From sequence record MW749003.1: a DNA stretch of 64,000 bases; one strand, given 5' to 3'. Under the pieces are notes generated by a model. It saw only the letters and a list, made by a program, of their open reading frames with translations. It was not told the origin of the DNA and did no database searches. Both the position numbers and the translations under genes were made by a program. Position 1 is the stretch's first letter, and each line of letters begins with the position of its first letter. Below are positions 22,783-58,996 of this stretch, piece after piece.

Positions 22783-25700
22783 TTATTCCCTAGTTAGAGA
22801 ATAGATTGCTTGTATTGCTTCATTCCCAATTTGGCGGGAGTTTCGACCCATTTGATCTAACATATTTTTCTTTTCCCATATTAGTCGTTCTGCTTCTTCA
22901 TTAGCTTCTTTACTAAATACTCCACGTAGAGATACTGTATCACCCAAAATCTTCCAGTAGATTCGCTACATCTACTGCGTTCTCTTATGAACTGCTCTAT
23001 ATTACTATAGAGATGAGACTATATCTTCACAATATAATTGTGCCCTCCGTTTCCATTTAAAGAGGAATTATAACCTTATTACGGAATACCTCTACCGCTT
23101 GGCTGTACTCTACTCCCTTCCATCTAACTAGCGTTATCACAGCGATCTGTTAGAGTGGTTTCGATAGTCGTTGAACCTTCATCTTTAAATGAATTAAAGA
23201 CGCTTGGATGCTGATTGTCCATATAGGATTTTCCAGCAGTTAAAAGGGTTTTACTACGACAGTAGATTATTATCTTTTATAGGTAAATACTAAATTACCA
23301 CAATCCCATATTCTTTTAAATCTAGTTTTATCCATGATTTCAAATTCAGTACTATTATCACTATATAATTTTGGAAATTTCTTTTTGAGATTAGACTTTC
23401 TATAATTAAATCTATGGAATCGTTGAGTTTTTTCAACATTAACATACCAATAGTTGGGTTTACTAATATGACTTAATTCAAATTTATTATTGATATAAAC
23501 ATTACCATCTGACCAGCGTCTATCTGCATAGGTTATTAATTCTTTCCACTCATAATTTCTCTCGAAGTATTTGAGAAGTTTACTAAAAGCACCTATTACT
23601 CTATAGTCCATATCGGTAGCGAATCTTGATAGTTCAAAAATATTATCAACACTATTTCTACCTAGACTTTTTCTAAGTTTACTAAAAGTCATAACCGCTA
23701 CAAGTTCATCGCCATCTTCTTTTGGAAGCCATAAGCCTAATTTAATTGATGACAAATCTTTTCCCTGAATGTGATTTCTTTCTAGGAATTCATTTTTAAA
23801 ATTGTTATCAATTACTTCTACATAACAATTTCTAGCGTATATTTTAGTAGAATTATTTAATTTTAGTAAGTGTCTTATTTTTTCTTTTACTATGAGAGGT
23901 TTGTTAACCCATTCGTCTTCAAAAATTTGAATTAGTCTAATCCCTTTACTATTACATTTTTCTAATTTTTCTAAATGATAGTTTCTTTTCTTCCCCATTT
24001 GCTCTGAATGCCAATATAAACCATTAAATTCAAAAGCAATTTTTTTGGAAGGAATAAATATATCAATCTCTTTACCTTCAAGTAATTTCCTGTCATTACA
24101 TATGACTTTATCTACAACTAATCCTTTAATAAAAGAAGATAGTTCTTTTTCCATTTTTGATGAACTTTTAAATGCACAATATGGACATCTATTTCCATTA
24201 TTAAAGTTTTTAATTGTAACTTCATACTCCTTATTACAACTATGATGTAACAACCTAATCTTCGTTTTATTATTACGATATTCACCTAATAATGAATACT
24301 CATTATTTGTAACTAAGCTAATTTTTCTTTTAACCTCATCAGTAGTTAGCCTTCTTTTACCAGAACATTGAGGACATCTATTTTTCAAAGCATAATAAGG
24401 AGTAGTCTTCCATTCATAATTACAGTCATTACATCTGAAAAGTATTTTGGTATCGATATTGATATATTTCTCAAGACTTATAAGTCTTCCATTAGTCTTT
24501 TCTTTTAATTCCTTCTTAAACTCATCATTGCTTTTTAATCTTGATTTACCTTTATTAATATCAGCACACTGAGGACATCTACTACCATTATGAAATATAT
24601 CAGGTCTAACCTCATATATATTTCCACATAGTTCATGCCTTAATTTGATTTTAGTCTTATTGTTAATATATTCATTGGATAAAACTGTATAGGTATTGTT
24701 AGTTAGTAATTTAACTTCTTCTTTGAATTCATCCAGTGTCTTTTTGCGTGGCATACACTAATACCTCCAAATAATTAATAATTATTTGTTTATTTGACAC
24801 TGTATTCCCTTAAAAAGAAATAATATTGAATTTATCGTAGTCCCCGCCTAAAGCCTTTAAATAACCATTATAAGGAATTACTGTATCAACAAAAAGTTCA
24901 TCCTCTGCGGGATAGTCAGGGTATATAACAGGATAATCAGGTAAGTATCTATCTTCCAGCTTTTGAGGTCGTGTTTCTTTTGTTGAGAGAATTCTAATTT
25001 TACTTGGATAAATATTCTATAGTGATAGGTAAAGATTTGATATAATCTCCTCTTTTTCCCCCACTTCACACCCTACGTGCGACTTTCACCGCATAAGGCG
25101 TTCCATCAAAATATATTATTTTGACTATGACCCTTCGCTCCAATGGAGTTACCCATCTTCATAACTACTATGGTCTGCTGACTTTCTATATAAGAGTATC
25201 AACTATAATTTCTCTTATATAGAATCTCTGACGTTCCGTAAATGATAGTATAGCTATAACTTAGATGCCTTCTGCCCTATATAAACTTCTATTGTACCAC
25301 ACTTTACAATCAGGTCGTTCACCAGTACCGTATTACTAAACCCTGAATTTATATAGTATAAAAAGGTTCGTGTTCCTCATCATATTATAGCACCGCCCAC
25401 CCTATCTATTAGTATTATAGCATTACTAATATTCAGATGACTTCACCTAACTTCATACAAATATTTTATATAGTTTAAAATAGATGCATGTAGGAGTATT
25501 AGCGACAAGTCTTCAATGAAAATGGTCATATCTTTTACTTGTTCTCATTTACAGTTTAGATTATAAAATCTACTCCATTTCACATTAAATGCTTATAGGA
25601 GAACGTCACATACGATACTGCTCTATTGGATATCTTGTTACATATACATGTTTATCTTTGGTAATATCAACTGCCGCAATGAATAGAATATCAGTTAATG

Positions 25701-26778
25701 TAAAGTTACGTCCTAGTTCTTCTCTATATAATGGAATAGGAATTTCATTCCCCTTATCATCTTTAATCATTAAACTATTAAAACGACTTTCAATAGACTT
25801 AATGTATAATGAGATCATCTTTTTAACTGCTTCCTCAGAAAATTGTTCTCTTATATTACTAATAGTTATCTCTTTTCCATTATGCTTAAATTTACTAAGT
25901 TCTGATTCACGTTCAAGAATATAATCTTGGATATATTTAAGAAAGAATGGATAAAATTCTACCACTAATTGTGATAGGGGAATACCTGTCCATCCAAATC
26001 TAATAGGGTTATCCTTCCAGCTATTTGACTTAAATCGTGGTGCTGAGATTACACTACGAGTTGCATAATCAACAGATTTACCTAAAGAGTTTTGATGGAA
26101 CATACCATTTTTACCAGCTAAAGAGGATGTAAAATAGTCATAGATATCATATAAAAGAGTCTGAATAGATGATTCTGTTATTACTCCCATAAAATCATAA
26201 TCTTCACCCTTAGAAATTGATTGGCTATACCTAATTAATTTAGCATATTTGTCATTCACTTCATCAACAGCTTTAATCGTATCATTAGAAGATTTTGAGG
26301 GATTATAATCTCTATAAAATGCTGGAATCACTAAATATTTGTCAATAAATATATCATCCTTACCAAGTTTATTTAATAATGTAAGATAACTTGTTCGTCT
26401 ATCAGTTCCAGTATTACTAAATTTTAATTGGTCGTAAATAGTATAAAAATAGGTAACTCCAGTTTTACCATTATCTTTATCTTCAACTAACTTGCCGCCC
26501 TCAACTTTAAAATATTTCTTTCCAGATAGACAATCTGCAATTTTTCGATCCATAGAGGTTAGAAGCTTATAAATTACTGGATGGAGAAATTTTCTCTTTA
26601 AGTCTATATAACCGAAAATTATTTTTCTTTCTTTACTTCCCGGATAACCAAAAATACTAGTTGAAAATAATCCATCTTCAGTTGGTATATTTCCCATATT
26701 AAAGTAAATCGGATTTGTTACTTCTTTACATGCATGAGAAGTAATAAATTTATCTATATTTAATGTATCTATTTTCAT
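22783..26778 (-). CDS. Multisubunit RNAP beta' N-terminal (catalytic) subunit, probably virion RNAP, spliced: complement(join(22783..22944,24834..25018,25614..26778)), 503 aa
   Basis: GLFSTSIFG, GKSVDYATRSVI and TRYP motifs. The spliced frame (1512 nt) reads TRYPIEQY|QNIYPSKI...NGYLKALGGDYD|GDTVSLRG, restoring the DxDGD catalytic motif. The late promoter at 26801-26812 fits a packaged enzyme. Confidence 0.92.
22945..24833 (-). mobile_element. Group I intron (1889 nt) with a homing endonuclease gene in the P1 loop, inserted in the DYD|GD active-site motif
   Basis: Exon end CUACGAU pairs with GUCGUAG (23254-23260). P4, R and S elements and the conserved 3' module lie at 22945-23250; terminal G at 22945. 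Confidence 0.93.
23270..24754 (-). CDS. Intron-encoded homing endonuclease: Zn-finger repeats + Vsr/EDxHD-like nuclease + C-terminal Mom-like GNAT domain
   Basis: Three H/C-xx-C...RCPxC repeats; EIDIFIP...FEFNGLYWH; ELSRFAT...ITYADRRWSDGNVY. Own late promoter at 24779-24790 and GGAGG RBS. Confidence 0.8.
   Translation of the reverse strand: MPRKKTLDEFKEEVKLLTNNTYTVLSNEYINNKTKIKLRHELCGNIYEVRPDIFHNGSRCPQCADINKGKSRLKSNDEFKKELKEKTNGRLISLEKYINIDTKILFRCNDCNYEWKTTPYYALKNRCPQCSGKRRLTTDEVKRKISLVTNNEYSLLGEYRNNKTKIRLLHHSCNKEYEVTIKNFNNGNRCPYCAFKSSSKMEKELSSFIKGLVVDKVICNDRKLLEGKEIDIFIPSKKIAFEFNGLYWHSEQMGKKRNYHLEKLEKCNSKGIRLIQIFEDEWVNKPLIVKEKIRHLLKLNNSTKIYARNCYVEVIDNNFKNEFLERNHIQGKDLSSIKLGLWLPKEDGDELVAVMTFSKLRKSLGRNSVDNIFELSRFATDMDYRVIGAFSKLLKYFERNYEWKELITYADRRWSDGNVYINNKFELSHISKPNYWYVNVEKTQRFHRFNYRKSNLKKKFPKLYSDNSTEFEIMDKTRFKRIWDCGNLVFTYKR
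25019..25613 (-). mobile_element. ORF-less group II intron (595 nt, IIB/bacterial class B-like)
   Basis: 5' end GUAUG; D1 closure UGACGUUC/GAACGUCA; ~25-nt D4 hairpin; D5 ACGCCUUAUGCGGUGAAAGUCGCACGUAGGGUGUG (CGC triad, GAAA loop); D6 ending CCUAUCACUAU. Excision restores the frame (c+ag = Gln). Confidence 0.9.
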
Positions 26779-49983: not shown

Positions 49984-50030
49984 AAAATAAAGGATAGAGA
50001 TAATTTAATCTCTATCCTTTATTTTTTTTT
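49984..50030. terminator. Bidirectional terminator
   Basis: AAGGATAGAGAT/ATCTCTATCCTT with A/T tails between convergent genes. Confidence 0.75.
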
Positions 50031-51759
50031 TTGTATACTTAAAAACTAAATTTCCACAATCCCAAATTCTATCATAACCAGCTTCTCTCATAATTTGAAT
50101 TTCTGTTTTATCATTACTATAAATTTCTGGAAATAATTCTTTTAATCTTTGTTTTCTATAGTTGTATCTATGTGAAAGACTCAATTTATTTTTATTAAAA
50201 TACCAATAATTTGGCTGAGAATTATGCATAAAGTGAAAGTTATTTTTATAATATACATTTCCTTCTGACCATCTTAAATCAGCATATGTTATGATGTTAT
50301 TCCAATCATAATTCTTTTTAAAATAACTGAATAATTTTCCAAAACTACCTATTACATTATAGTCTCTTTCTGTAGCAAATCTACTTAATTCATAGTCATA
50401 TTTATTCCCTTTTTGCCCTAAGCTAACTCTAGGTTTACAGAATGTCATTACTGCTACTAACTCATCACCCTCATTCCTTGGATACCATAGTCCCAGTTTA
50501 ATAGTAGAGTTATCAGATCCCTGAATATGATTTTTATCTAAAAATTCTCTTTTCACATTATTCTGAATTTCTTTTATATAACATTTTCTAGCATATATTT
50601 TTTCTCCATTATTTAAACCTAAAATATGTTTTATCTTTCCCTTTATAAGTTCTTTATTATCAATCCACTCATTCTCAAATAAATGAATTAATCTTATACC
50701 TTTTTCATTACATTTTTTCAATTTATTTAGATGGTAGTTTCTACCTTTTCCTTGAGATTCACCATGCCAATATAAACCATTATATTCAATTGCTATTTTC
50801 TTTGAAGGTATATAAATATCCAGTTCTAAACCTTCAAGTATTTTTCTGTCTGATAGAATTACATTAGTGCTATTGGGGAGAATTTGTTTAATATAATCAT
50901 ATAATTCAATCTCATCTTTTGAATTATGTTTCTTTAGTTGACATCTAGGACAATCTCTTTTAACTTTTTTACCTCTTGAATTACCATGTAAAATATCGAC
51001 CGGTCTAACCTTCCAAGAATAGCCACATGAATGCTCAATAACTATTGGAGTTTTATTATTAATATATCTACTCTTAATTGTATAATCATTACTATTAAAT
51101 ATTCTATAAAAATCTTCTTTAAAACCATTAGATCCTTTATTTTTTGGATTTTTATTACATATATTACACCTTTTTCTTTTTAGGAAATTAGTTGGTGTAA
51201 TAAAGAAATTATGAGAATCACTAGTATTGTGTCTCATCTCAATTTTATCTTGAGAGCTAATATATTCTCCTAATACAGTATATTCATCTCCTACTAAATC
51301 ATACACTTCTTTAATAAACATTTCAGTAGTCTTTGTCTTTTTCCTTTTTATTAGTTTCTTAGTACAATCAGGACATCTTGAACCCTTACTGAGAAAGTCA
51401 TTAGGTCTTTTTTTAAATTCCTTATTACAGATGTTATGTCTAAGTAATACTAGTTCAGAACTATTAATATATTCTCCTAATACAGTATATTCATCCCCTA
51501 CTAATTCATACACTTCTTTAATAAACATTTCAGTAGTCTTATTTTTTCTTTTAGATATTCTTTCTGATTTATGTAAAGGACATCTATTACCTGCATTTAA
51601 AAAGCCATTTGGTGTGACATAGTATTCATGACTGCATTTTTCATGTTTCATTTTTATTTTATTATTAGTTCCAGTATATTCTCCTAATACAGTATATTCA
51701 TCCCCTACTAATTCATACACTTCTTTAATAAACATTTCAGTAGTCTTCTTTTTAGGCAA
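50005..51759 (-). CDS. Free-standing homing-endonuclease-like protein: Zn-finger array + Vsr/EDxHD-like nuclease + Mom-like GNAT (likely TTG start 51759)
   Basis: Paralog of 23270-24754 (ELDIYIPSKKIAIEYNGLYWH; ELSRFAT...ITYADLRWSEGNVY). It lies outside any intron, after the beta gene stop. The start was chosen by the AAAGGA RBS and similarity to MPRKKT. Confidence 0.8.
   Translation of the reverse strand: MPKKKTTEMFIKEVYELVGDEYTVLGEYTGTNNKIKMKHEKCSHEYYVTPNGFLNAGNRCPLHKSERISKRKNKTTEMFIKEVYELVGDEYTVLGEYINSSELVLLRHNICNKEFKKRPNDFLSKGSRCPDCTKKLIKRKKTKTTEMFIKEVYDLVGDEYTVLGEYISSQDKIEMRHNTSDSHNFFITPTNFLKRKRCNICNKNPKNKGSNGFKEDFYRIFNSNDYTIKSRYINNKTPIVIEHSCGYSWKVRPVDILHGNSRGKKVKRDCPRCQLKKHNSKDEIELYDYIKQILPNSTNVILSDRKILEGLELDIYIPSKKIAIEYNGLYWHGESQGKGRNYHLNKLKKCNEKGIRLIHLFENEWIDNKELIKGKIKHILGLNNGEKIYARKCYIKEIQNNVKREFLDKNHIQGSDNSTIKLGLWYPRNEGDELVAVMTFCKPRVSLGQKGNKYDYELSRFATERDYNVIGSFGKLFSYFKKNYDWNNIITYADLRWSEGNVYYKNNFHFMHNSQPNYWYFNKNKLSLSHRYNYRKQRLKELFPEIYSNDKTEIQIMREAGYDRIWDCGNLVFKYTKKKIKDRD
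51261..51747. repeat. Three 73-bp near-identical direct repeats, 207-bp period (51261, 51468, 51675)
   Basis: Each encodes KTTEMFIKEVY(E/D)LVGDEYTVLGEY. Two copies are identical; the third differs at 2 positions. Confidence 0.9.
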
Positions 51760-51780
51760 AACAATCATCCTTTTATATAA

Positions 51781-51820
51781 ATTGGATTTCAACTATTATT
51801 TTGTTTAGTTGAAATCCAAT
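51781..51820 (-). promoter_or_regulatory. Late promoter AACA-N6-TA forming the loop of a perfect 15-bp inverted repeat
   Basis: Arms ATTGGATTTCAACTA and TAGTTGAAATCCAAT; the loop 51796-51805 is AACAAAATAA on the minus strand. Confidence 0.65.
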
Positions 51821-51838
51821 TTGTTTATCAATAAAAAA

Positions 51839-54800
51839 TTATTCTGAATATATTTTACCAATTTCTCGTTTAAGATGTACTAATGCTTTGTTTAAATATA
51901 GAGCATTATAAATATCAACGGTCATGCGTGAAACAATACTCAATGGACTCATAATAGCTTCAATATTCTCATCTGGATCATTCTCACTAAAAGGCTCTTG
52001 ATCTTTAGGAATAACATCAGATACAATTGTTTTAAGTGCTGTATAATACGTAATCTTATCTCCAATACCAAGTTCATCATCATACTCAATATAAATCTCA
52101 ATGAGTAGTCCGTCTACTTCAGTACCTTTAATTTTCTCACCTGATTGCTTTTGAATAGGTTTAAGATTAACAGAAGTCAGATCATTAGTAACAGACTTAA
52201 TCTTATCTTCTTTCTTCTTACTATCTTTAATATAGTTCTTCAGAATCTTTTGTACTGAAGGAGAAAACTCACTGATATCTTTATTGTAGTACATTACAAC
52301 ATCTACAATCTTACCAGTATATTTAGAACTTACTTTGTTCTTAGATAACTCATTAATAGTCTCATTAAAGTCATCTCCTAGTTTATCTAAGAGTTGGTTG
52401 AGTGATTTATCTTCAAAGGAGTTTTCAAAGATAATCAATGGATCACCAGTCTTAACCATATCGCCTTTCTTAACAATAAAGTCAATGTTTGAGTTAACTC
52501 CAAGAGCAAGTTCTTTCTTCATAGTAATTTTAGTAGATAGGTCTTGAGATAAGCTTTCTGTAATAATACTACTATCTTCATAAGTGTAATCTGCGCTTGC
52601 TAGTGCTACTTTACAAAGCTTCCCTGTAGTATACGTGATATCATCTTTCTTATCGCCAAGGAAGTAACTTGGATTCTTCGCTAGGATATCATCTTTTTTG
52701 AATTTCTCTCCTACTTTGATAATGAGTTCTTTACGATTAGCAATGTAAACAATTATCTTCCACCAAATTCGCTAGTTTTGGTGCGCCCTCTAACGGACTG
52801 CTCCATGTTACCATGAAGTTGAGACTATATCTTCAAAGTTCCCTGTTTCCCAGTATACATAAATAAAAGTATACCAGATTTCATCTCAGAAACCTGCCAC
52901 CAATCGCTTGTGGGGTACTCTACTCATCTTTATTAATAAGATTTTCGATAGTCGTTGAACGTTCTCTATTAGTTTAATAGAGCTTCGCTTCTGATTATCC
53001 TTTTAATAAGGACTTCCCAGAAATTAAAGGAATTTAACGTGAGCCTTTAAACCCACCATTACTATTCTTACTCATATGCTCGGAGAGATCAATGACGTCT
53101 TTCTTACCATCATTATAACGAACGACAGCTAGCTCATGTTCTTCATCTATGGACTCTAGAACTCCATCTTTTTTTGCTCTAAACACAAAGTCGTCACTTA
53201 GAATATAAGCAACAGTCTTCTCTACACCACTACCAAATAGAGGTTTAGATTGCTTTGTGGTAGGAATGATCGTTAACTTCCATTAGATTCGCTACGTCTA
53301 ATGCGTTCTCTTATGAACTGCTCTATATTTCTATAGAGACGAGACTATATCACTATCCTTAATAATTAAGGATAACTCCCATTTCCATTTAAGGGATTCT
53401 CACCCACTCCAAACACTTGAGCCGTACTCCTATTGCGGAATTTCACCGCTACTCACAATCCTAAGATTGCTTTCGGATAGTCGTTGAACTTTATTCAAAA
53501 GTTTTCTTTAAGTATTCTTCTAGATTACTTAACTGTGTATAATTGAATCTGAATAGTTTATAACCCTTTCTTTTACAATACTCATTTTTTAGATTATCAC
53601 GGAATTGTATATCCTCTAAGCCTTCTTCTCCACCAAAAAAATCAGATGGCTTAAAATGTTGCTTACCATCATATTCAACTAATATTTTAGTTCCGTCCTC
53701 ATCTTCAAAATAGAAATCAAATCGTAATCTTCTTCCTGTTTTTGGATTAACTAAGTCTGAAAATGATTTTTCAATTTCAAAGTAGATATTATTCTGGTTG
53801 AAATAATTAGTAATAATTTGAATCCCACTAGAATTTCTTCCAATTCCATTACTACAATGAGGACATCTGTACCCTAAAATAAAGTTATTTGGCTTTATCT
53901 TAAAAGTTTTTTCACATTTTCCATGATATAATGTAACATGTTTGTGAGCATGGGTATATTCATTTGTTAGAGAATATTCATTACCAACCAATTCATAAAG
54001 TTTTTCTTTAAATGTCTCTGTAGTTCTTTTTTTAGTTTTAGCACAATTTGGACAACGATAACCAGAAAGAAAATTTACAGGTAATACAGAATATTCATTA
54101 CCGCATTTGTTATGTCTCATCTTAACGTGAGTCATATTGTTTATATATTCAGAAGTAGGTTTATATTCATTACCGACCAATTCTTCAACTTTTTTTCTAA
54201 AATCAGAATCGGTTCTTTTTTTATTTTTAGCACAATTTGGACAACGATCTCCTCGTCTGATAAACTGATATGGTTGAACCTTATATTCATTACCACATTT
54301 ATTATGTCTAAATAAAATTTTAGTATGCTGTGCTAAAAATCTTCCTAATACCACATATTCATCACCAGTTAATTCTTTTACTTTCTTTACAACTTCCATA
54401 TGTTTTTTATTCAATAAACAAATTGGACATTTAGTTACTTTATTTTTCTTAAAGAAACTATCTGGTCTCATTTCAAATGTACTATCGCATACTTTATGAT
54501 AAAATATAGCATTTATAGTTGATGATATATATTCTCTAACTTCAAATTCATTATTATATACATCTTTTAATCTTCTAGAATAAACTTTACTTAACATATT
54601 ACACCCTCCGACAAACAGTTGTAATAATATGTTAAATTATTTAAAAACTATTTTGAATATTAGCTGCTGATTCTCCAATTCTATTAGTTTTCAAACCTTC
54701 ACGCTTATTATTTCTAATTACGTTGTGGTCTAATAGACTCTAAGGAATTTCCAGCAATTAGAGAGTTTATCTAATAGTATTACTACTATTAGGCACGAAT

Positions 54801-57800
54801 CATGCTTTTGTTGGGTACTCTGCATGCCTACTCGTGGAGGATCAGCATGCCTTACTGTAAAGGAGTTCAATAATTCTGCTGGACCATAGATATTTGTCGT
54901 GTTATTTTTTGTATTAGGATTGGTGTCTAAGAATCCTCGTGTGTTTTTAAATGCTGGATCAAAAGTTAACTGTCTAACCCATTATCTTCATATAGGTTCG
55001 CTACACCTATACCGTTCTCTTATGAACTGCTCCATGTTACCATGAAGATGAGACTATATCTTTATCTAGTCAAAAAAAAAGAAAGGAGATGACTAGATAT
55101 CTCCCATTTCCATTTAAGGGATTCTCACCCACTCCAATCGCTTGAGCCGTACTCCTATTGTGTGTTAACCACTAAAGGATAGTCGTTGAACGTTACTCTC
55201 GTTATAATTAAAAATAATTTATAAAATTATTATTTTATTTTTTCCATAATAGTAGCTCTCCTTTTTAACTTACTACTATTATAATATATTTAACGAGAGT
55301 CTTCGATACGGATTGTCCTATTATTAGGAGTTTCCCGTAGTTAGAGAGATTTTATCATTATATATCACTATATAAGGGGGCAGTTTAATTCACCCCAACT
55401 TTCATTATCTTCCACTAGATTCGCTACATCTAATGCGTTCTCTTATGAACTGCTCTATGTTTCCATAGAGATGAGACTATATCATCATCCTATTAGGATG
55501 CCTCCCATTTCCAACTCCAATCGCTTGAGTTGTACTCTACTCCCTTCCACTAACTAGCGTTATCACAACGATTTGTTAGAGTGGTTTCGATAGTCGTTGA
55601 ACCTTACTCTAATGAGTCTTGGATGCTGATTGTCCTTAAAGGATTTTCCAGCAGTTAAAGAGGTTTACTTATAATATTTCTATTATAAGGGACTATTATA
55701 AATCTTGTCTGGAAATTCAAGAATTATAATAATTCAATCCGAGTCGGGCGTTGACATTGCCATGATTCCACGCATACTAGGGTCATAAGCTCGAATATCA
55801 GTTGTATAAGCATCCGTTTTCCTTCATATAGGTTCGCTACACCTATACCGTTCCTTAGAACTGCTCTAAGTTTCCTTAGAGACGAGACTATATCATCACT
55901 TAAAAAGTGCCTCCCATTTCCAGCCTCAATTGCTTAGGCTGTACTCTACTCCCTTCCTACTAACTAGCGTTATCACAACGATCTGTTAAAGTGGTTTCGA
56001 TAGTCGTTGAACCTTTACCTTATTACAAATAATTTGTAACTTAGGTACTTGGTTGCTTATGATTACCCAATCCTTTAAATTTTTACCATACCTGAATTGT
56101 TATATTCAGCCATCTATTATGTTTCCATATAGATTTGGTATTAAAGGCTCTAAGGGTTTTCCAGCAGTTAAAGAGGTTTTAATTGGACTAAAACACTTTA
56201 ATCCAAGTTCCTTCCTGAAAGCCCCTTGTAAGTAGCCGCACCACCCTTTTCAATTTCCAAAGAAGGGTTAAGGACACTATATTCATCGACAGTAGGTGAA
56301 TTCATTAATGTCTTTAATAGAATATCCTGTGGAACAGACATCTTAATAGGATTACCAGCTTTCAGTGTATCCTTATACGTTTTAAATGAATCTGCCAAGA
56401 TTTTATATAGATAAGCATTTACTTGCTCAGTACCACGGATTCGATATGAATTCATATCATTCAGTGGACTATAGCTCATATCTTCCAATAAGGTATTCGC
56501 ATACAACAATATGTCATAGATATTCTCAGGTAATTCTAACTGTTTCAGCACATCTAATGTGATAGGATCAACCATTAGAGATAGAGTATTGTGAAGACCT
56601 TTACCCATATTTCTACTACCGAACATCTCATAGAAAGTCTCAATATAAGGATCTTTAGAGTTCATTTCTTCAAATGCATACTCTTCAGTAGCCATAGTAC
56701 TTAGACCACTTAATAATAGGGAATTTCTCAATAAAGAATTATTATAATATAGGTATCCATCTTTAAAACGGATCTTATCATAGTCATCATCAATTGTAAT
56801 TCTCTTATTTTTAGTATCAAAGCTATATTCAATATTATATCTTTCTAATAAATCTTCTAATCCTAATTCATATCCAAGAAGAACCACTAGAGGGATCATT
56901 CTATTATTAATACGAACTCGGTTATATGCTAGAGACTTAGAATTACTTAAAGAAGATAATTTTTTATAAGCTTCCTCACTAAGTGAAGTGACAACAACTT
57001 TAATAATGAGTTCTGAAAGACTCATATCAGTATTTTCTTGTTTCTTATTATTAATCAGATAAACTCTTTTACTTGAACGATTAAGAGCAATAACGTTTTC
57101 ATTATCTTTTGTATGACCGATTGGTAAGAATTGTTTATCATCAATATTAATCTTAGCAAGCTTAGCCATATTATCAAGATCACTTTTCAATAAATCTTCT
57201 ACTTCTTTTTGACTGAACATAAGTTTATATTCATCATTCTCTAAGCTTAGAAGGAAAGAAGAAATCTCATTATATTCAAGAGTTGTTTCATAACCCTCAT
57301 TAATTGTTAGAGCGTTACCTAGGCGATAATTAAACTTCTTACCTGATACCTTAAATTCATTTAAATCCATACCAAAGAGTTTCTTAAGTTTCTCAGTTTT
57401 ATGAGATAATTTAGAACCAAAGCGCATGACAAAAAACTTATTGTAGTTAGTAGTAATCTGAACTTCATCAGGTTTTGTTTTTACAATGGGCAAAGATAGA
57501 ATTTGCTTAAGAATTAATTTTTTACCACCATTAATATTCATAAACCTACCATCTCTGATAATAGGATAATCAAATTTAACAGTATGCTTTACATTACGAT
57601 CATCTTGGAAAGTAACAGTATAAGTTAATTTTTTTGATAAATCAGTAGATGTGTCTTCTGTTTTAATATCACTTACAAATAATTTAACATCGCTATCTCC
57701 ATTAAATGATGAAAGAACTGCAACTAAGTCTTTTTTCATCTGTTTTTCAAAGTAGCTCATATCAAAATCTTTGAGATTTGAATATCTAGTTTCTTCTTGA

Positions 57801-58996
57801 ATAACATTTGTATTGGTAATTGGCTTTCGGTCAATACTTGTTGATTTAAAGTCATCAATAATATCTTGAATATTAATATCATCAAGAGTAACTTGTTTTT
57901 GTTTTTCTTTTAGACGTTCAAGAGTCTTTCTCTGTTTAATTTCATCTCCACCAGTAGACTGAAGCTCTTTAAGAGTTGAAATATCGGCTTTTAATTCTTT
58001 ACTGTTATTTAAAATATCAATGATTTCATCTTCACTTTTATCAAGAATATCTTCATCACTTGAATCAATAGCTTTTTCAATATCATCACCAATCTTATCA
58101 GTAACTTCAATTGCACTACTAGATAGTTTTGTATTTCCATCGATTTGGAAATTACTTAATAATTTTTCTTTAACTCTTTCAGATTTTTCTTTTACTAATG
58201 CATCTCTCTTGTTTTCTGTTTCTTGAGTTGCCTCTTCTTTACCTAAAGGTTTTTCATCATTATTAGTCCTCTGATGGTTTGCTGTTTTAATGAGAACATT
58301 TAATGCATTAAGGAATCTATTTGCAAGAAGATTAGAAAGTTCATCATTAATATTGAATTTAATAAATGTATTATTAACTGTAGTATAAAAAATAAAGTCT
58401 ACATTCTTAAGCTCTTTCTTCTGTTCCTCTGTTAACAACTTTCTTTTAATTGCCATATAGATATAAGCAAAAGGTGTTCTTGCATTATTTAAGTCAAAGA
58501 ATGATGGATCAAGAACATTGTCAGGAACAGGAATTGCTACTGCTTTATTCTCATATGATGCGCCCTCTTTAATTTTAGATATAAGAAAATCAAAGTACAT
58601 TTCAACTCGTTTTCTTCCACGAACTTTAATTTCTACTTCATTCTCAAGATGCTCGTTTGTAATATCATAGATCAAGTTAAGATCATTATAATTAGTTAAG
58701 GCACGTTTAGTATAAATAATACTAGAACATTTTGCTTTTACCTCATCATAATATTTCTTTTGATCTACAATAATTCTTTTATTCTTCTGAATGGTATTGA
58801 ATGCTCTTGGAATATATACTCCTCTAAAAAAAGAAGGACTGAATATATTAGAATTAATAAAATCAAATATCTCACTTTGATTATTTCCTGAAAAGAAAAT
58901 CAAATTTGAATTACGGTCATTTTTCCTTTTTTTAATGGATGAAAGTTTTATATTAGAGTACACTCTCAATTCCTTGAGATTATCAAGATAAAACAA
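51839..58996 (-). CDS. Multisubunit RNAP beta subunit, probably virion RNAP, spliced: complement(join(51839..52749,53051..53270,54802..54979,55392..55402,55737..55814,56201..58996)), 1397 aa
   Basis: The spliced frame (4194 nt) reads GLSGRNLD|DAYTTDIRAYDPSMRG...STPDSD|KVGV|VRQLTFD...GMQSTQQKH|IIPT...SNGG|FYIANR...GDKITYYTALKTIVS...PLSIVSRM, giving beta conserved regions in order. Late promoter at 59022-59033. Confidence 0.92.
52750..53050 (-). mobile_element. Group I intron beta-I5 (301 nt, ORF-less)
   Basis: P1 GGGU/GCUC; P4 variant UUCUG/CAGAA as in terL-I1; R and S elements; terminal G at 52750. Confidence 0.9.
53271..54801 (-). mobile_element. Group I intron beta-I4 (1531 nt) with a homing endonuclease gene in the P6 region
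   Basis: P1 GCAU/GUGC. The ORF lies between the Q element (CAGCAG) and the R element (UUCAACGACUA). Terminal G at 53271. Confidence 0.92.
53491..54597 (-). CDS. Intron-encoded homing endonuclease: four Zn-finger repeats + Vsr/EDxHD-like nuclease, no GNAT domain
   Basis: HxxC...RCPxC repeats; LRFDFY...VEYDGKQH; own late promoter at 54622-54633. Confidence 0.82.
   Translation of the reverse strand: MLSKVYSRRLKDVYNNEFEVREYISSTINAIFYHKVCDSTFEMRPDSFFKKNKVTKCPICLLNKKHMEVVKKVKELTGDEYVVLGRFLAQHTKILFRHNKCGNEYKVQPYQFIRRGDRCPNCAKNKKRTDSDFRKKVEELVGNEYKPTSEYINNMTHVKMRHNKCGNEYSVLPVNFLSGYRCPNCAKTKKRTTETFKEKLYELVGNEYSLTNEYTHAHKHVTLYHGKCEKTFKIKPNNFILGYRCPHCSNGIGRNSSGIQIITNYFNQNNIYFEIEKSFSDLVNPKTGRRLRFDFYFEDEDGTKILVEYDGKQHFKPSDFFGGEEGLEDIQFRDNLKNEYCKRKGYKLFRFNYTQLSNLEEYLKKTFE
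54980..55391 (-). mobile_element. Group I intron beta-I3 (412 nt) with a vestigial endonuclease expression cassette
   Basis: P1 GGGGU/GCCCC; P4 variant UACGG/CCGUA; R and S elements; terminal G at 54980. Confidence 0.9.
55403..55736 (-). mobile_element. Group I intron beta-I2 (334 nt, ORF-less)
   Basis: P1 GGAU/GUCC; P4, R and S elements; terminal G at 55403. Confidence 0.9.
55815..56200 (-). mobile_element. Group I intron beta-I1 (386 nt, ORF-less)
   Basis: P1 UUGGAU/GUCCAA; P4, R and S elements; terminal G at 55815. Confidence 0.92.

Follow-up and report, generated by a model that had tools for sequence, protein, structure and literature searches.

What interrupts the RNA polymerase gene of Bacillus phage vB_BspM_Internexus, how would the interruption be removed from the transcript, and by what route might it have reached its site? 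The window analysed here comprises bases 1-64000 of the phage sequence (MW749003; full genome, 252 kb). An earlier note, made from these letters alone, had proposed a minimal ORF-less group II intron and had provisionally placed the phage in the AR9 group; the phage does belong to the PBS1/AR9 genus Takahashivirus. Group II introns were long thought to be absent from phages. The rarity claimed in the note agrees with a 2025 survey, in which they occurred in approximately 0.06-0.07% of phage genomes (Merk et al.). The novelty that it implied does not hold, because the intron was already in the literature, for Internexus itself as well as for AR9/PBS1: Table S1 of Merk, Jones & Eddy (NAR 2025) lists the Internexus intron at the same coordinates, as class IIB and "orfless". 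Publication in 2025 covered the intron with its class and termini, its lack of an ORF and the siblings that bear an HEG; what we add is a sharply localised block of synonymous divergence that spans the group II and group I intron sites. Taken together, the evidence makes it very probable that the element is a class IIB ribozyme that splices itself without an encoded protein, that it is a sibling of the AR9/PBS1 intron, and that its lineage homes at the DNA level.

Two Rfam models match, both above their gathering thresholds and in the correct order and orientation: RF02004 (group-II-D1D4-5) at 25386-25559 (80.5 bits, threshold 34.5, E=1.6e-15, full model 1-201) and RF00029 (D5/D6) at 25019-25103 (55.1 bits, threshold 40, E=4.4e-08). 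The boundaries come from the intron-less gene of phage Goe21, whose positions 1-1165 align with 26778-25614 and 1166-1350 with 25018-24834; the intervening sequence is therefore exactly 25613-25019, or 595 nt. Its removal restores the conserved ORF, base-exact against Goe21, and would yield the predicted YQNIYP joint (...RYPIEQY/QNIYP), as in the intron-less allele. The spliced ORF is full length, and its product differs from the Goe21 protein at three residues. The D1 closure, the EBS1 hairpin, D2, D4 and D5 all reappear in the unconstrained MFE fold, which has a z score of -5.4 and was equalled by none of 100 shuffles. On these sequence comparisons, the stretch 25613-25019, inside the gene of a phage RNA polymerase, is confirmed as a genuine ORF-less group II intron in the sense of Rfam RF00029 and clan CL00102. 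Every sequence feature listed in the earlier note lies where it had been placed, on the minus strand, and a correct blind call of so rare an element from raw sequence validates that first-stage reading; the label 'minimal' was too strong, as approximately 600 nt is the normal size for an ORF-less group II intron.

The interrupted gene had also been named correctly as that of a phage RNA polymerase, and it specifies a beta-prime N-terminal-type subunit of a multisubunit enzyme of the virion type. We make this assignment because the spliced protein aligns with the AR9 RNAP beta-prime chains 7S00/7S01 in a PDB comparison, GDYDGD included; in Pfam, RNA_pol_Rpb1_1 was the sole match to the host protein, below threshold. 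The group II site lies 62 codons upstream of the catalytic DYDGD motif, and the other features of the locus are collected in Table 1. In the record, exon 1 is annotated as INTERNEXUS_29, which runs 8 nt too far, into the group II intron.

Table 1. Features of the interrupted polymerase locus and of the group II ribozyme (window positions; intron numbering where stated)
Feature	Positions	Strand	Basis
Complete ORF-less group II (IIB) intron, 595 nt	25019..25613	(-)	Rfam; Goe21 empty site; Merk et al. 2025 Table S1
Exon 1, RNAP beta-prime N-terminal-type subunit gene	25614..26778	(-)	Goe21 comparison
Exon 2, 185 nt, ends ...GGDYD	24834..25018	(-)	Goe21 comparison; no annotation in record
Exon 3 (GDTVSL...)	22783..22944	(-)	Separately annotated as INTERNEXUS_26
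5' end GUAUG, A3 replacing usual G3	25609..25613	(-)	Sequence
Domain 1, closing stem intron 7-13 / 378-384	25230..25607	(-)	7 Watson-Crick pairs; MFE fold; RF02004
Epsilon-prime, G163 U164 in GAAGU bulge, pairs with A3-U4	25450..25451	(-)	Comparison of relatives
EBS1 GGUACUG, intron 285-291, in 17-nt hairpin loop	25323..25329	(-)	Match to IBS1; covariation
IBS1 CAGUAUC, end of exon 1	25620-25614	(-)	Pairing with EBS1
Candidate EBS2 UUUUAU, intron 251-256 (tentative)	25358..25363	(-)	Pairing; conserved context
IBS2 AUAGAG, end of exon 1 (tentative)	25626-25621	(-)	Pairing with candidate EBS2
Domain 2, 12-bp stem, intron 391-402 / 418-429	25185..25223	(-)	Perfect inverted repeat; MFE fold
Domain 3 (approximate), conserved GUCAGCAG...CCAUAGUAG...CGAAGGG	25127..25182	(-)	RF01998; MarsHill
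Domain 4, 21-nt hairpin, 9 bp + AUA loop	25105..25125	(-)	Verified pairing; AR9/PBS1 comparison
Domain 5	25068..25101	(-)	RF00029 alignment; listed pairs
Domain 6 with bulged branch-point A588 (window 25026)	25022..25064	(-)	RF00029 alignment
Group I intron, 1,889 nt, splits catalytic DYD/GD	22945..24833	(-)	RF00028; boundary comparison
Intact 494-aa Hef-like/CapR-type HEG in group I intron	24754-23270	(-)	Pfam CapR/DUF4379

The six-domain layout proposed in the note is present, with the D1 closure, D6 and the terminal AU all in place between the termini GUAUG...AU. The GUAUG start, which had been called non-canonical, is indeed there, as a compensated trait of the lineage: the homologous epsilon-prime bulge reads GAAGU in GUAUG introns and GAAGC in GUGYG relatives, and the unusual A3 is compensated by a U in the bulge where those relatives have a C. 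Domain 3 is 82% identical to that of the MarsHill intron and is covered by a sub-threshold RF01998 alignment over 25130-25223. Domain 4 is reduced to a hairpin as described, of 21 nt rather than the approximately 25 nt given. The CGC triad and GAAA loop of domain 5 were borne out by the RF00029 alignment and verified pairs (triad C514-G515-C516, with a G515-U544 wobble and a 3' bulge at 536-538). In domain 6, a bulged A588 stands 7 nt from the intron's 3' end, with the G553-U589 helix on one side and the G555-C586 helix on the other. Merk et al. define class IIB by a 4-nt AARC-type lambda/epsilon-prime bulge in D1; the Internexus intron has this bulge in its AARY variant, A-A-G-U at intron 161-164, the last base of which covaries with position 3. 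Class IIC, suggested by the CGC triad, was rejected in view of the 7-bp EBS1, the length of approximately 600 nt and the AARY bulge, and also of the location of the intron inside a coding region and not after a terminator.

The EBS1 candidate of the note forms seven pairs, one of them G-U, with CAGUAUC at the end of the exon, and among relatives the EBS1-homologous loop is complementary to the exon end in six different exon contexts. For EBS2, whose pairing with IBS2 is a feature that class IIC lacks, selection by complementarity alone was rejected, since several 6-mers (at 46, 130 and 251) are equally good. We prefer 251-256 because of its conserved context only: the conserved motif ACGAAYC precedes it, as it precedes an exon-complementary stretch in PALS_2 and LPJP1-rpoBC. 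This candidate pairs over 6 bp (two G-U) with AUAGAG at exon positions -13 to -8, its positional homology coming from two relatives only. In Table S1 of Merk et al. (2025), pseudoknot interactions are scored '+' for the Internexus intron.

How, then, would the message be repaired? The ribozyme itself would do so: EBS1, and probably EBS2 too, would keep exon 1 in place by its end, the bulged A588 would attack the 5' splice site at GUAUG, and the freed exon 1 would attack the 3' splice site after ...CUAU, so that the joining of CAGUAUC to AGAAUA would restore ...YQNIYP.... No intron-encoded protein would have a part in this, and general host RNA chaperones may help. From the sequence, splicing without a cognate maturase can reasonably be inferred, because domain 4 is a bare 21-nt hairpin and the phage appears to have no reverse transcriptase (RT) or maturase. 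As the note had claimed, the 64-kb window encodes no RT, and the full-genome search that it proposed gives the same answer: the 252-kb genome, searched in six frames by tblastn and hmmsearch with two RT queries of group II type plus a profile built from two sequences (control E = 2e-41), yielded no RT/maturase (best E = 3.2). Nor is there an RT among the 303 annotated features of the genome, in which no second group II intron was found.

Two other readings bear on this point. The GenBank record annotates only fragments of the gene, with no join, as would suit a dead relic in a pseudogene; this is extremely improbable, however, as the catalytic elements and tertiary partners are all intact and covarying, the exons, which are under strong purifying selection (exon 2 has 32 changes, only two of them altering an amino acid), still give a full-length frame, and in the AR9 record the same gene appears as a joined CDS that encodes a subunit of the virion RNAP. 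A ribozyme that needs a protein in trans in vivo, either the maturase of a host group II intron or a phage RNA-binding protein, is a more serious alternative, although we regard it as unlikely. Without their intron-encoded protein (IEP), the majority of bacterial IIB introns are poor at splicing at physiological Mg2+, and with many IIB introns needing such help, independence of protein in vivo is a point that we infer. RT-bearing relatives with a D5 of the same pattern exist in viral contigs and Clostridium tetani, and ORF-less introns served by the IEP of another intron have been documented (Meng et al. 2005, as cited by Merk et al. 2025). Against this, no RT/maturase was found anywhere in the phage, and the bare domain 4 hairpin lacks an extended D4A-type platform for maturase binding. 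An exact-match scan with the D5 pattern, and so a weak one, matched no Bacillus representative genome and only Clostridium tetani. The AR9 copy, too, is without a maturase, yet it interrupts a virion RNAP subunit gene in a phage whose host, per the record, is B. subtilis 168. The 2016 abstract of Lavysh and colleagues on the AR9 genome reportedly describes the interrupting sequences as demonstrated self-splicing introns of groups I and II. Self-splicing without an encoded protein is retained as the preferred reading.

The note had suggested a comparison with AR9. The AR9/PBS1 intron (AR9 g145/g147) is a near-identical ribozyme (97-99%) in the same gene, at the same insertion site, with the same EBS1 and the same GUAUG / CGC / AU signature, and 185 nt downstream it is followed by the same group I intron, which carries a Hef-like HEG. 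Identity to AR9 is 99.0% over intron 1-500 and 96.7% over 505-595, similar to that of the exons (98.2%). The difference lies in domain 4: the AR9/PBS1 intron is 1,552 nt long, with a 957-nt HEG cassette and a 17-bp D4 stem, whereas Internexus has only the 21-nt hairpin and no ORF. The AR9 cassette encodes the 302-aa g147, an EDxHD/Vsr-type homing endonuclease with CapR-like/treble-clef domains, which is preceded by an RBS-like GGAG and has its stop codon inside the D4 3' strand. In Internexus, D4 holds no HEG ORF, and no paralogue in the rest of the genome comes closer to g147 than 37% identity. These comparisons show the Internexus element to be an endonuclease-less sibling of the AR9/PBS1 intron.

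Did the Internexus form lose the endonuclease, as a deletion derivative of an AR9-like intron after fixation? We give this history a little less than an even chance. AR9/PBS1 and MarsHill all carry an HEG at the same D4 position, the MarsHill intron at the same codon position of the orthologous gene; the 97-99% identity outside D4 means that the change was recent; and HEG loss after fixation is the expected course of the Goddard-Burt homing cycle. However, there is no ORF remnant and no simple microhomology junction, the D4 stems of AR9 and Internexus being of different design (17 bp versus 9 bp), and in the c-st intron, which sits in an unrelated gene, D4 is the same in size and shape and has one compensatory pair, an indication that the short hairpin is ancestral. 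HEG orthology proved uninformative for polarising gain versus loss: at just 34% identity, g147 and its MarsHill counterpart are no more alike than genomic paralogues, and may represent independent invasions.

The note had supposed that any past retrohoming would have been into uracil-containing DNA. This supposition is not supported, given that the AR9/PBS1 siblings carry in D4 an HEG and not an RT; because siblings of 97-99% identity carry a homing endonuclease in its place, we favour homing of this lineage at the DNA level, and Merk et al. (2025) reached the same conclusion of HEG-type mobility for AR9/PBS1. The lineage would thus spread by double-strand-break homing. The Internexus intron itself could not move alone; it would persist most likely by vertical descent, and could be carried by co-conversion when the intact endonuclease of the neighbouring group I intron triggers repair. 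Its presence would also split the would-be target of an AR9-type endonuclease.

The group I intron (RF00028 match at 22995-23306, 85.5 bits) begins 185 nt downstream of the group II site, and the sequence around the two sites is distinctive. Of 53 differences from the intron-less Goe21 allele, 36 sit in a 205-nt stretch that opens at -23 relative to the group II site and closes at the group I site, where 7.2 would be expected (P ~ 2e-19), and only two of the 36 change an amino acid; exon 2 is 17% diverged from Goe21, almost entirely at synonymous positions. This block over both sites suggests that the group II intron and its group I neighbour travel as one unit. It is possible, and we advance it tentatively, that they form a composite cassette in which the group II intron, after losing its own mobility protein or never having possessed one, spread among co-infecting jumbo phages by co-conversion with the group I HEG and blocked cutting by g147; the block would then be a concrete, testable footprint of the joint transfer of both introns. 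Such hitch-hiking is deduced from one intron-less comparator, Goe21, and the block could instead mean segment replacement in Goe21. The two introns do not seem to be obligately linked, because one metagenomic homologue (L024; incomplete, 61% identical) apparently contains the group I intron but lacks the group II one. Rfam gave no group I match for L024, and the call rests on direct sequence resemblance to the core; a search of IMG/VR for further alleles of the gene returned only AR9 itself. Arrival and spread by RT-mediated retrohoming into (uracil-containing) phage DNA, with the RT supplied in trans, is very unlikely. Other members of the ribozyme lineage do encode RT/maturase/HNH proteins, and the Goe21 empty site, with a perfect IBS1 and a better IBS2, would be a valid target for reverse splicing, but no RT was found in the phage, the siblings carry a DNA homing endonuclease instead, and a flanking block of synonymous divergence is a signature of DNA recombination or co-conversion, which retrohoming does not produce.

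Internexus and AR9/PBS1 constitute a natural, near-isogenic HEG-minus/HEG-plus pair, with the same ribozyme in an essential-looking polymerase gene. The pair suits tests of splicing without a dedicated protein, and could show whether a neighbouring group I endonuclease mobilises an ORF-less group II intron. A parallel is provided by the Staphylococcus jumbo phages S6 (HEG) and PALS_2 (ORF-less), a pair in Table S1 of Merk et al. (2025) whose ribozymes are approximately 98% identical to each other and whose HEG-plus/HEG-minus dimorphism likewise lies wholly within the D4 loop. The UGA of the conserved D4-3' UGAUGG serves as the end of the HEG in both S6 and AR9; the S6/PALS_2 introns differ in occupying the RNAP beta gene and not beta-prime, in their AGC triad and GUGUG start, and in the host genus. 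The closest ribozyme outside Takahashivirus is the ORF-less IIB intron in terL of Listeria phage LPJP1 (approximately 76% identity over aligned parts), which shares the GUAUG, CGC and AU features, the D1D4-5 model, the GAAGU epsilon-prime bulge and a homologous EBS1 hairpin. It lies in a terminase gene with its EBS1 retargeted (AGCGGUU), and the LPJP1 genome, unlike that of Internexus, has an RT-bearing group II intron that could act in trans. Bacterial-type IIB introns that encode an RT/maturase (IMG/VR L017/L018; Clostridium tetani) have a D5 that fits the 39-nt search pattern as well, and share the Rfam D1D4-5 architecture (122 bits), but their D4 encodes a 631-aa RT-X-HNH protein and they presumably move by retrohoming, whereas Internexus has no IEP. 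A precedent for the replacement of an RT by a DNA homing endonuclease, with self-splicing without a maturase, is offered by the fungal mitochondrial rRNA group II introns that encode LAGLIDADG or GIY-YIG homing endonucleases (Mullineux et al. 2010, as cited by Merk et al. 2025); these are organellar, and their endonucleases belong to a family other than the EDxHD/Vsr-like plus CapR-like type, which occurs here in the AR9/PBS1 siblings only.

The window corresponds to positions 1-64000 of Bacillus phage vB_BspM_Internexus (MW749003.1; 252,262 bp), to which 24800-25900 gave a megablast match with 100% identity and unchanged coordinates. What delimits its group II intron? The gene of the intron-less comparator, the related phage vB_BsuM-Goe21 (Goe21), is uninterrupted (1,512 nt); its positions 1-1165 align with window 26778-25614 and positions 1166-1350 with 25018-24834, and the intervening sequence is therefore exactly 25613-25019, 595 nt. 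Across the predicted exon junction, the Goe21 alignment gives a protein reading ...RYPIEQYQNIYPSK... In an Rfam scan, the whole of the RF02004 (group-II-D1D4-5) model matched 25386-25559 on the minus strand (80.5 bits, E=1.6e-15; curated threshold 34.5 bits), and RF00029 (D5/D6) matched 25019-25103 on the same strand (55.1 bits, E=4.4e-08; threshold 40 bits), terminating exactly at the 3′ boundary proposed in the earlier note. That group II call, made from the sequence alone, is thus upheld by both covariance models and by base-exact boundaries, and the GUAUG start, D1 closure, D5 CGC triad and GAAA loop, D6 and terminal AU that it listed were each verified in the sequence; the small D4 hairpin, put at about 25 nt, measures 21 nt. 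An unconstrained fold of the intron (z = -5.4 against dinucleotide shuffles) recovered the D1 closure, the EBS1 hairpin, D2, D4 and D5. The intron is an intact IIB ribozyme: its catalytic elements and EBS1 are all present, and purifying selection on the gene around it is strong.

Features of the intron, its host gene and related elements
Feature	Coordinates	Strand	Basis or source
Group II intron	25613-25019 (595 nt)	minus	Goe21 empty-site alignment, Rfam
5′ end GUAUG	25613-25609	minus	sequence
D1 closing stem, 7 bp	intron 7-13/378-384	minus	pairing checked
D2, 12-bp stem		minus	pairing checked
D4, 9-bp stem and AUA loop, 21 nt	25125-25105	minus	pairing checked
D5, triad C514-G515-C516, G515-U544 wobble, GAAA loop, 3′ bulge		minus	
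D6, bulged A588, 7 nt before intron end	25026	minus	
Intron 3′ terminus AU		minus	sequence
Exon 2, 185 nt, ending ...GGDYD	25018-24834	minus	Goe21 alignment
Group I intron, 1,889 nt	24833-22945	minus	RF00028, 85.5 bits
Terminase group I introns	596-842, 914-1184, 1266-1546, 1673-1942	plus	Rfam
Beta-subunit gene group I introns	52801-53085, 55030-55401, 55453-55711, 55864-56243	minus	
Two CapR/Hef-like HEG ORFs in beta-subunit gene	50005-51759, 53491-54597	minus	
RT-bearing group II introns, 631-aa RT-X-HNH	L017 790-3508, L018 1248-3966		171-kb and 28-kb viral contigs

The EBS1 candidate of the earlier note, GGUACUG (25329-25323), lies in a 17-nt hairpin loop and is complementary over 7 bp to CAGUAUC at the end of the exon. 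When eight related phage introns were taken from Table S1 of Merk et al., the equivalent loop of seven held a heptamer able to pair with the end of that intron's own exon (e.g., CAUUGAU/AUCAAUG, GUAGUCU/AGACUAC and AGCGGUU/GACCGUU). Because this complementarity extends over six different exon contexts, it represents genuine covariation, and the candidate stands. The GUAUG start had been called non-canonical; it is present but compensated, since the lambda/epsilon-prime bulge of D1 is GAAGU in GUAUG introns (Internexus, AR9 and LPJP1-terL) and GAAGC in GUGYG relatives, so that a G3-C pair has become A3-U. For EBS2 there is a tentative candidate, UUUUAU (intron 251-256), complementary to AUAGAG at exon positions -13 to -8; a conserved ACGAAYC motif precedes it, as it does the candidate EBS2 sequences of two relatives.

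The intact Goe21 protein (503 aa) gave a paralogue match to the beta-prime chains of the AR9 non-virion RNA polymerase (RNAP) (7S00/7S01), with which its catalytic GDYDGD is aligned; in the AR9 record, the orthologue g145 is the virion RNAP beta-prime N-terminal subunit, with three exons joined. The group II site lies 62 codons upstream of this motif, and the group I intron that follows exon 2 cuts the Mg-binding motif exactly at DYD|GD, with the terminal U of exon 2 and its own terminal G as the expected group I ends. The 494-aa Hef-like endonuclease that it encodes is intact and has CapR/treble-clef domains. In the Internexus record (MW749003), the exons of this gene appear as separate fragments and exon 2 is left out: INTERNEXUS_29 (25606-26778, minus) over-runs 8 nt into the group II intron to a spurious stop, and exon 3, which begins at 22944, is called as its own 54-aa ORF (22783-22947, minus), whose first 3 nt belong to the group I intron.

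How might such an intron splice and move? The absence of a reverse transcriptase (RT) from the window, reported previously, extends to all six frames of the 252,262-bp genome, including the 188 kb beyond the window: with the LPJP1 intron RT, the 631-aa RT of the IMG/VR relative L018 and a small two-sequence profile as queries, the best match had E=3.2, while the two query RTs matched each other at E=2e-41. Nor was an RT found among the annotated features of the record, or a second group II intron in the genome by Rfam. Two viral contigs and Clostridium tetani harbour RT-bearing introns with a D5 that fits the same 39-nt search pattern, C. tetani ATCC 19406 having two on one contig (L022/L023); the pattern occurred in zero Bacillus representative genomes, a weak negative given the exact-match search. 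The intron, which has no mobility protein of its own, most likely self-splices through a branch formed at A588, and general host chaperones may help. Because sibling copies encode an endonuclease and no RT, the lineage probably spreads through DNA-level homing, and the earlier speculation on retrohoming is not supported. The accompanying AR9-group assignment is sound (genus Takahashivirus, of the PBS1/AR9 group), and a uracil-DNA-glycosylase inhibitor annotated at 241027-241281 is consistent with the assumption of uracil-containing DNA.

AR9 and PBS1 share both the intron and its site, with 99.0% identity to the Internexus ribozyme over intron 1-500 and 96.7% over 505-595. Their copies measure 1,552 nt. 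The additional 957 nt lie exactly within D4, whose stem is 17 bp compared with 9 bp in Internexus, and consist of a leader, which contains a GGAG ribosome-binding site, and a 302-aa ORF, g147. The latter has CapR/treble-clef zinc-finger domains and has been classed as a distant EDxHD/Vsr-type homing endonuclease (Merk et al., PMC12350094); the Internexus genome contains about nine paralogues of this g147/Hef-like family, all ≤37% identical to g147. In AR9 (L001 5249-5252), the ORF reaches the 3′ strand of D4 and stops at the UGA of UGAUGG, conserved ahead of D5. The MarsHill intron (L010 1718-3193) occupies the same codon position in the orthologous gene (RYPIENF|L-NV; RYPIEQY|Q-NI in Internexus) and ends in ...CGCUAU, one base beyond the end in Table S1 of Merk et al. 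Was the homing endonuclease gene (HEG) gained or lost? In the c-st intron, which lies in an unrelated gene, D4 is identical in size and shape to that of Internexus and includes one compensatory pair; this favours an ancestral short hairpin and later gain, whereas the HEGs at the same-site introns of AR9/PBS1 and MarsHill, together with the logic of the homing cycle, favour loss from an AR9-like intron, even though those HEGs share only 34% identity.

Sequence divergence in the exons bears on transfer. Relative to Goe21, 14 of the 1,165 exon 1 positions differ, including four in the 23 nt next to the group II site; in exon 2 the figure is 32 of 185, with only two amino-acid changes; in exon 3, 7 of 162 positions differ for Internexus and 1 of 162 for AR9. 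Altogether, 36 of the 53 differences across the gene are concentrated in 205 nt (7.2 expected, P ~ 2e-19). This block of exon sequence (within 24834-25636) starts 23 nt upstream of the group II site, ends at the group I site, is almost purely synonymous and recurs in AR9. This suggests that recombinational repair swapped both introns, with exon 2 between them, as one block. Because the block is the footprint expected of such joint exchange, we propose that the ORF-less intron may hitch-hike on the endonuclease of its group I neighbour. The two can apparently occur apart: a 61%-identical metagenomic homologue (Ga0172378_10151726, 1-1873) is continuous across the group II site, and its frame breaks directly after ADYDG, past which the sequence nearly matches the group I core (P3-P6) of the window's introns before the contig stops ahead of the 3′ half.

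Elsewhere in the window, four tandem group I introns (70-94 bits) interrupt the terminase large-subunit gene (596-1942, plus), with micro-exons of only 71, 81 and 126 nt between them, and the record shows this gene as disconnected fragments. The RNAP beta-subunit gene (50005-58996, minus) contains at least four more. No group I intron reached the Rfam gathering threshold in Internexus 64001-252262 (188 kb), reflecting either a subtype missed by RF00028 or stricter filters on large inputs. Many genes there are annotated in pieces beside HEGs (DnaB-like helicase, gyrB, topoisomerase IV A, DNA ligase, RNAP subunits and an AAA ATPase).

The intron finding is correct but already known, and the novelty implied in the earlier note is lost, because Merk, Jones and Eddy (Nucleic Acids Res 2025, PMC12350094), whose survey of phage genomes relied on the same Rfam models, list it in Table S1 at identical coordinates, as class IIB and ORF-less, along with the HEG-containing AR9 and PBS1 copies; the comparison with AR9 proposed previously thus returns a published ribozyme at the same site and leaves the identity call intact. 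They also discuss both HEG-based homing of AR9/PBS1-type introns and their sharing of a gene with a group I intron, and credit an earlier mention of the AR9 case to Lavysh et al. 2016. Our additions are modest. They are the absence of an RT from the whole genome, the covariation spelled out for EBS1 and epsilon, the comparison of D4 forms, a confined zone of exon divergence that suggests transfer together with the group I intron, and the HEG stop within UGAUGG. The last is a design shared by two independent HEG-bearing group II introns, since the HEG of Staphylococcus phage S6 also stops inside UGAUGG; S6 and PALS_2 show a HEG-plus/HEG-minus dimorphism like that of AR9 and Internexus, but in another RNAP gene.
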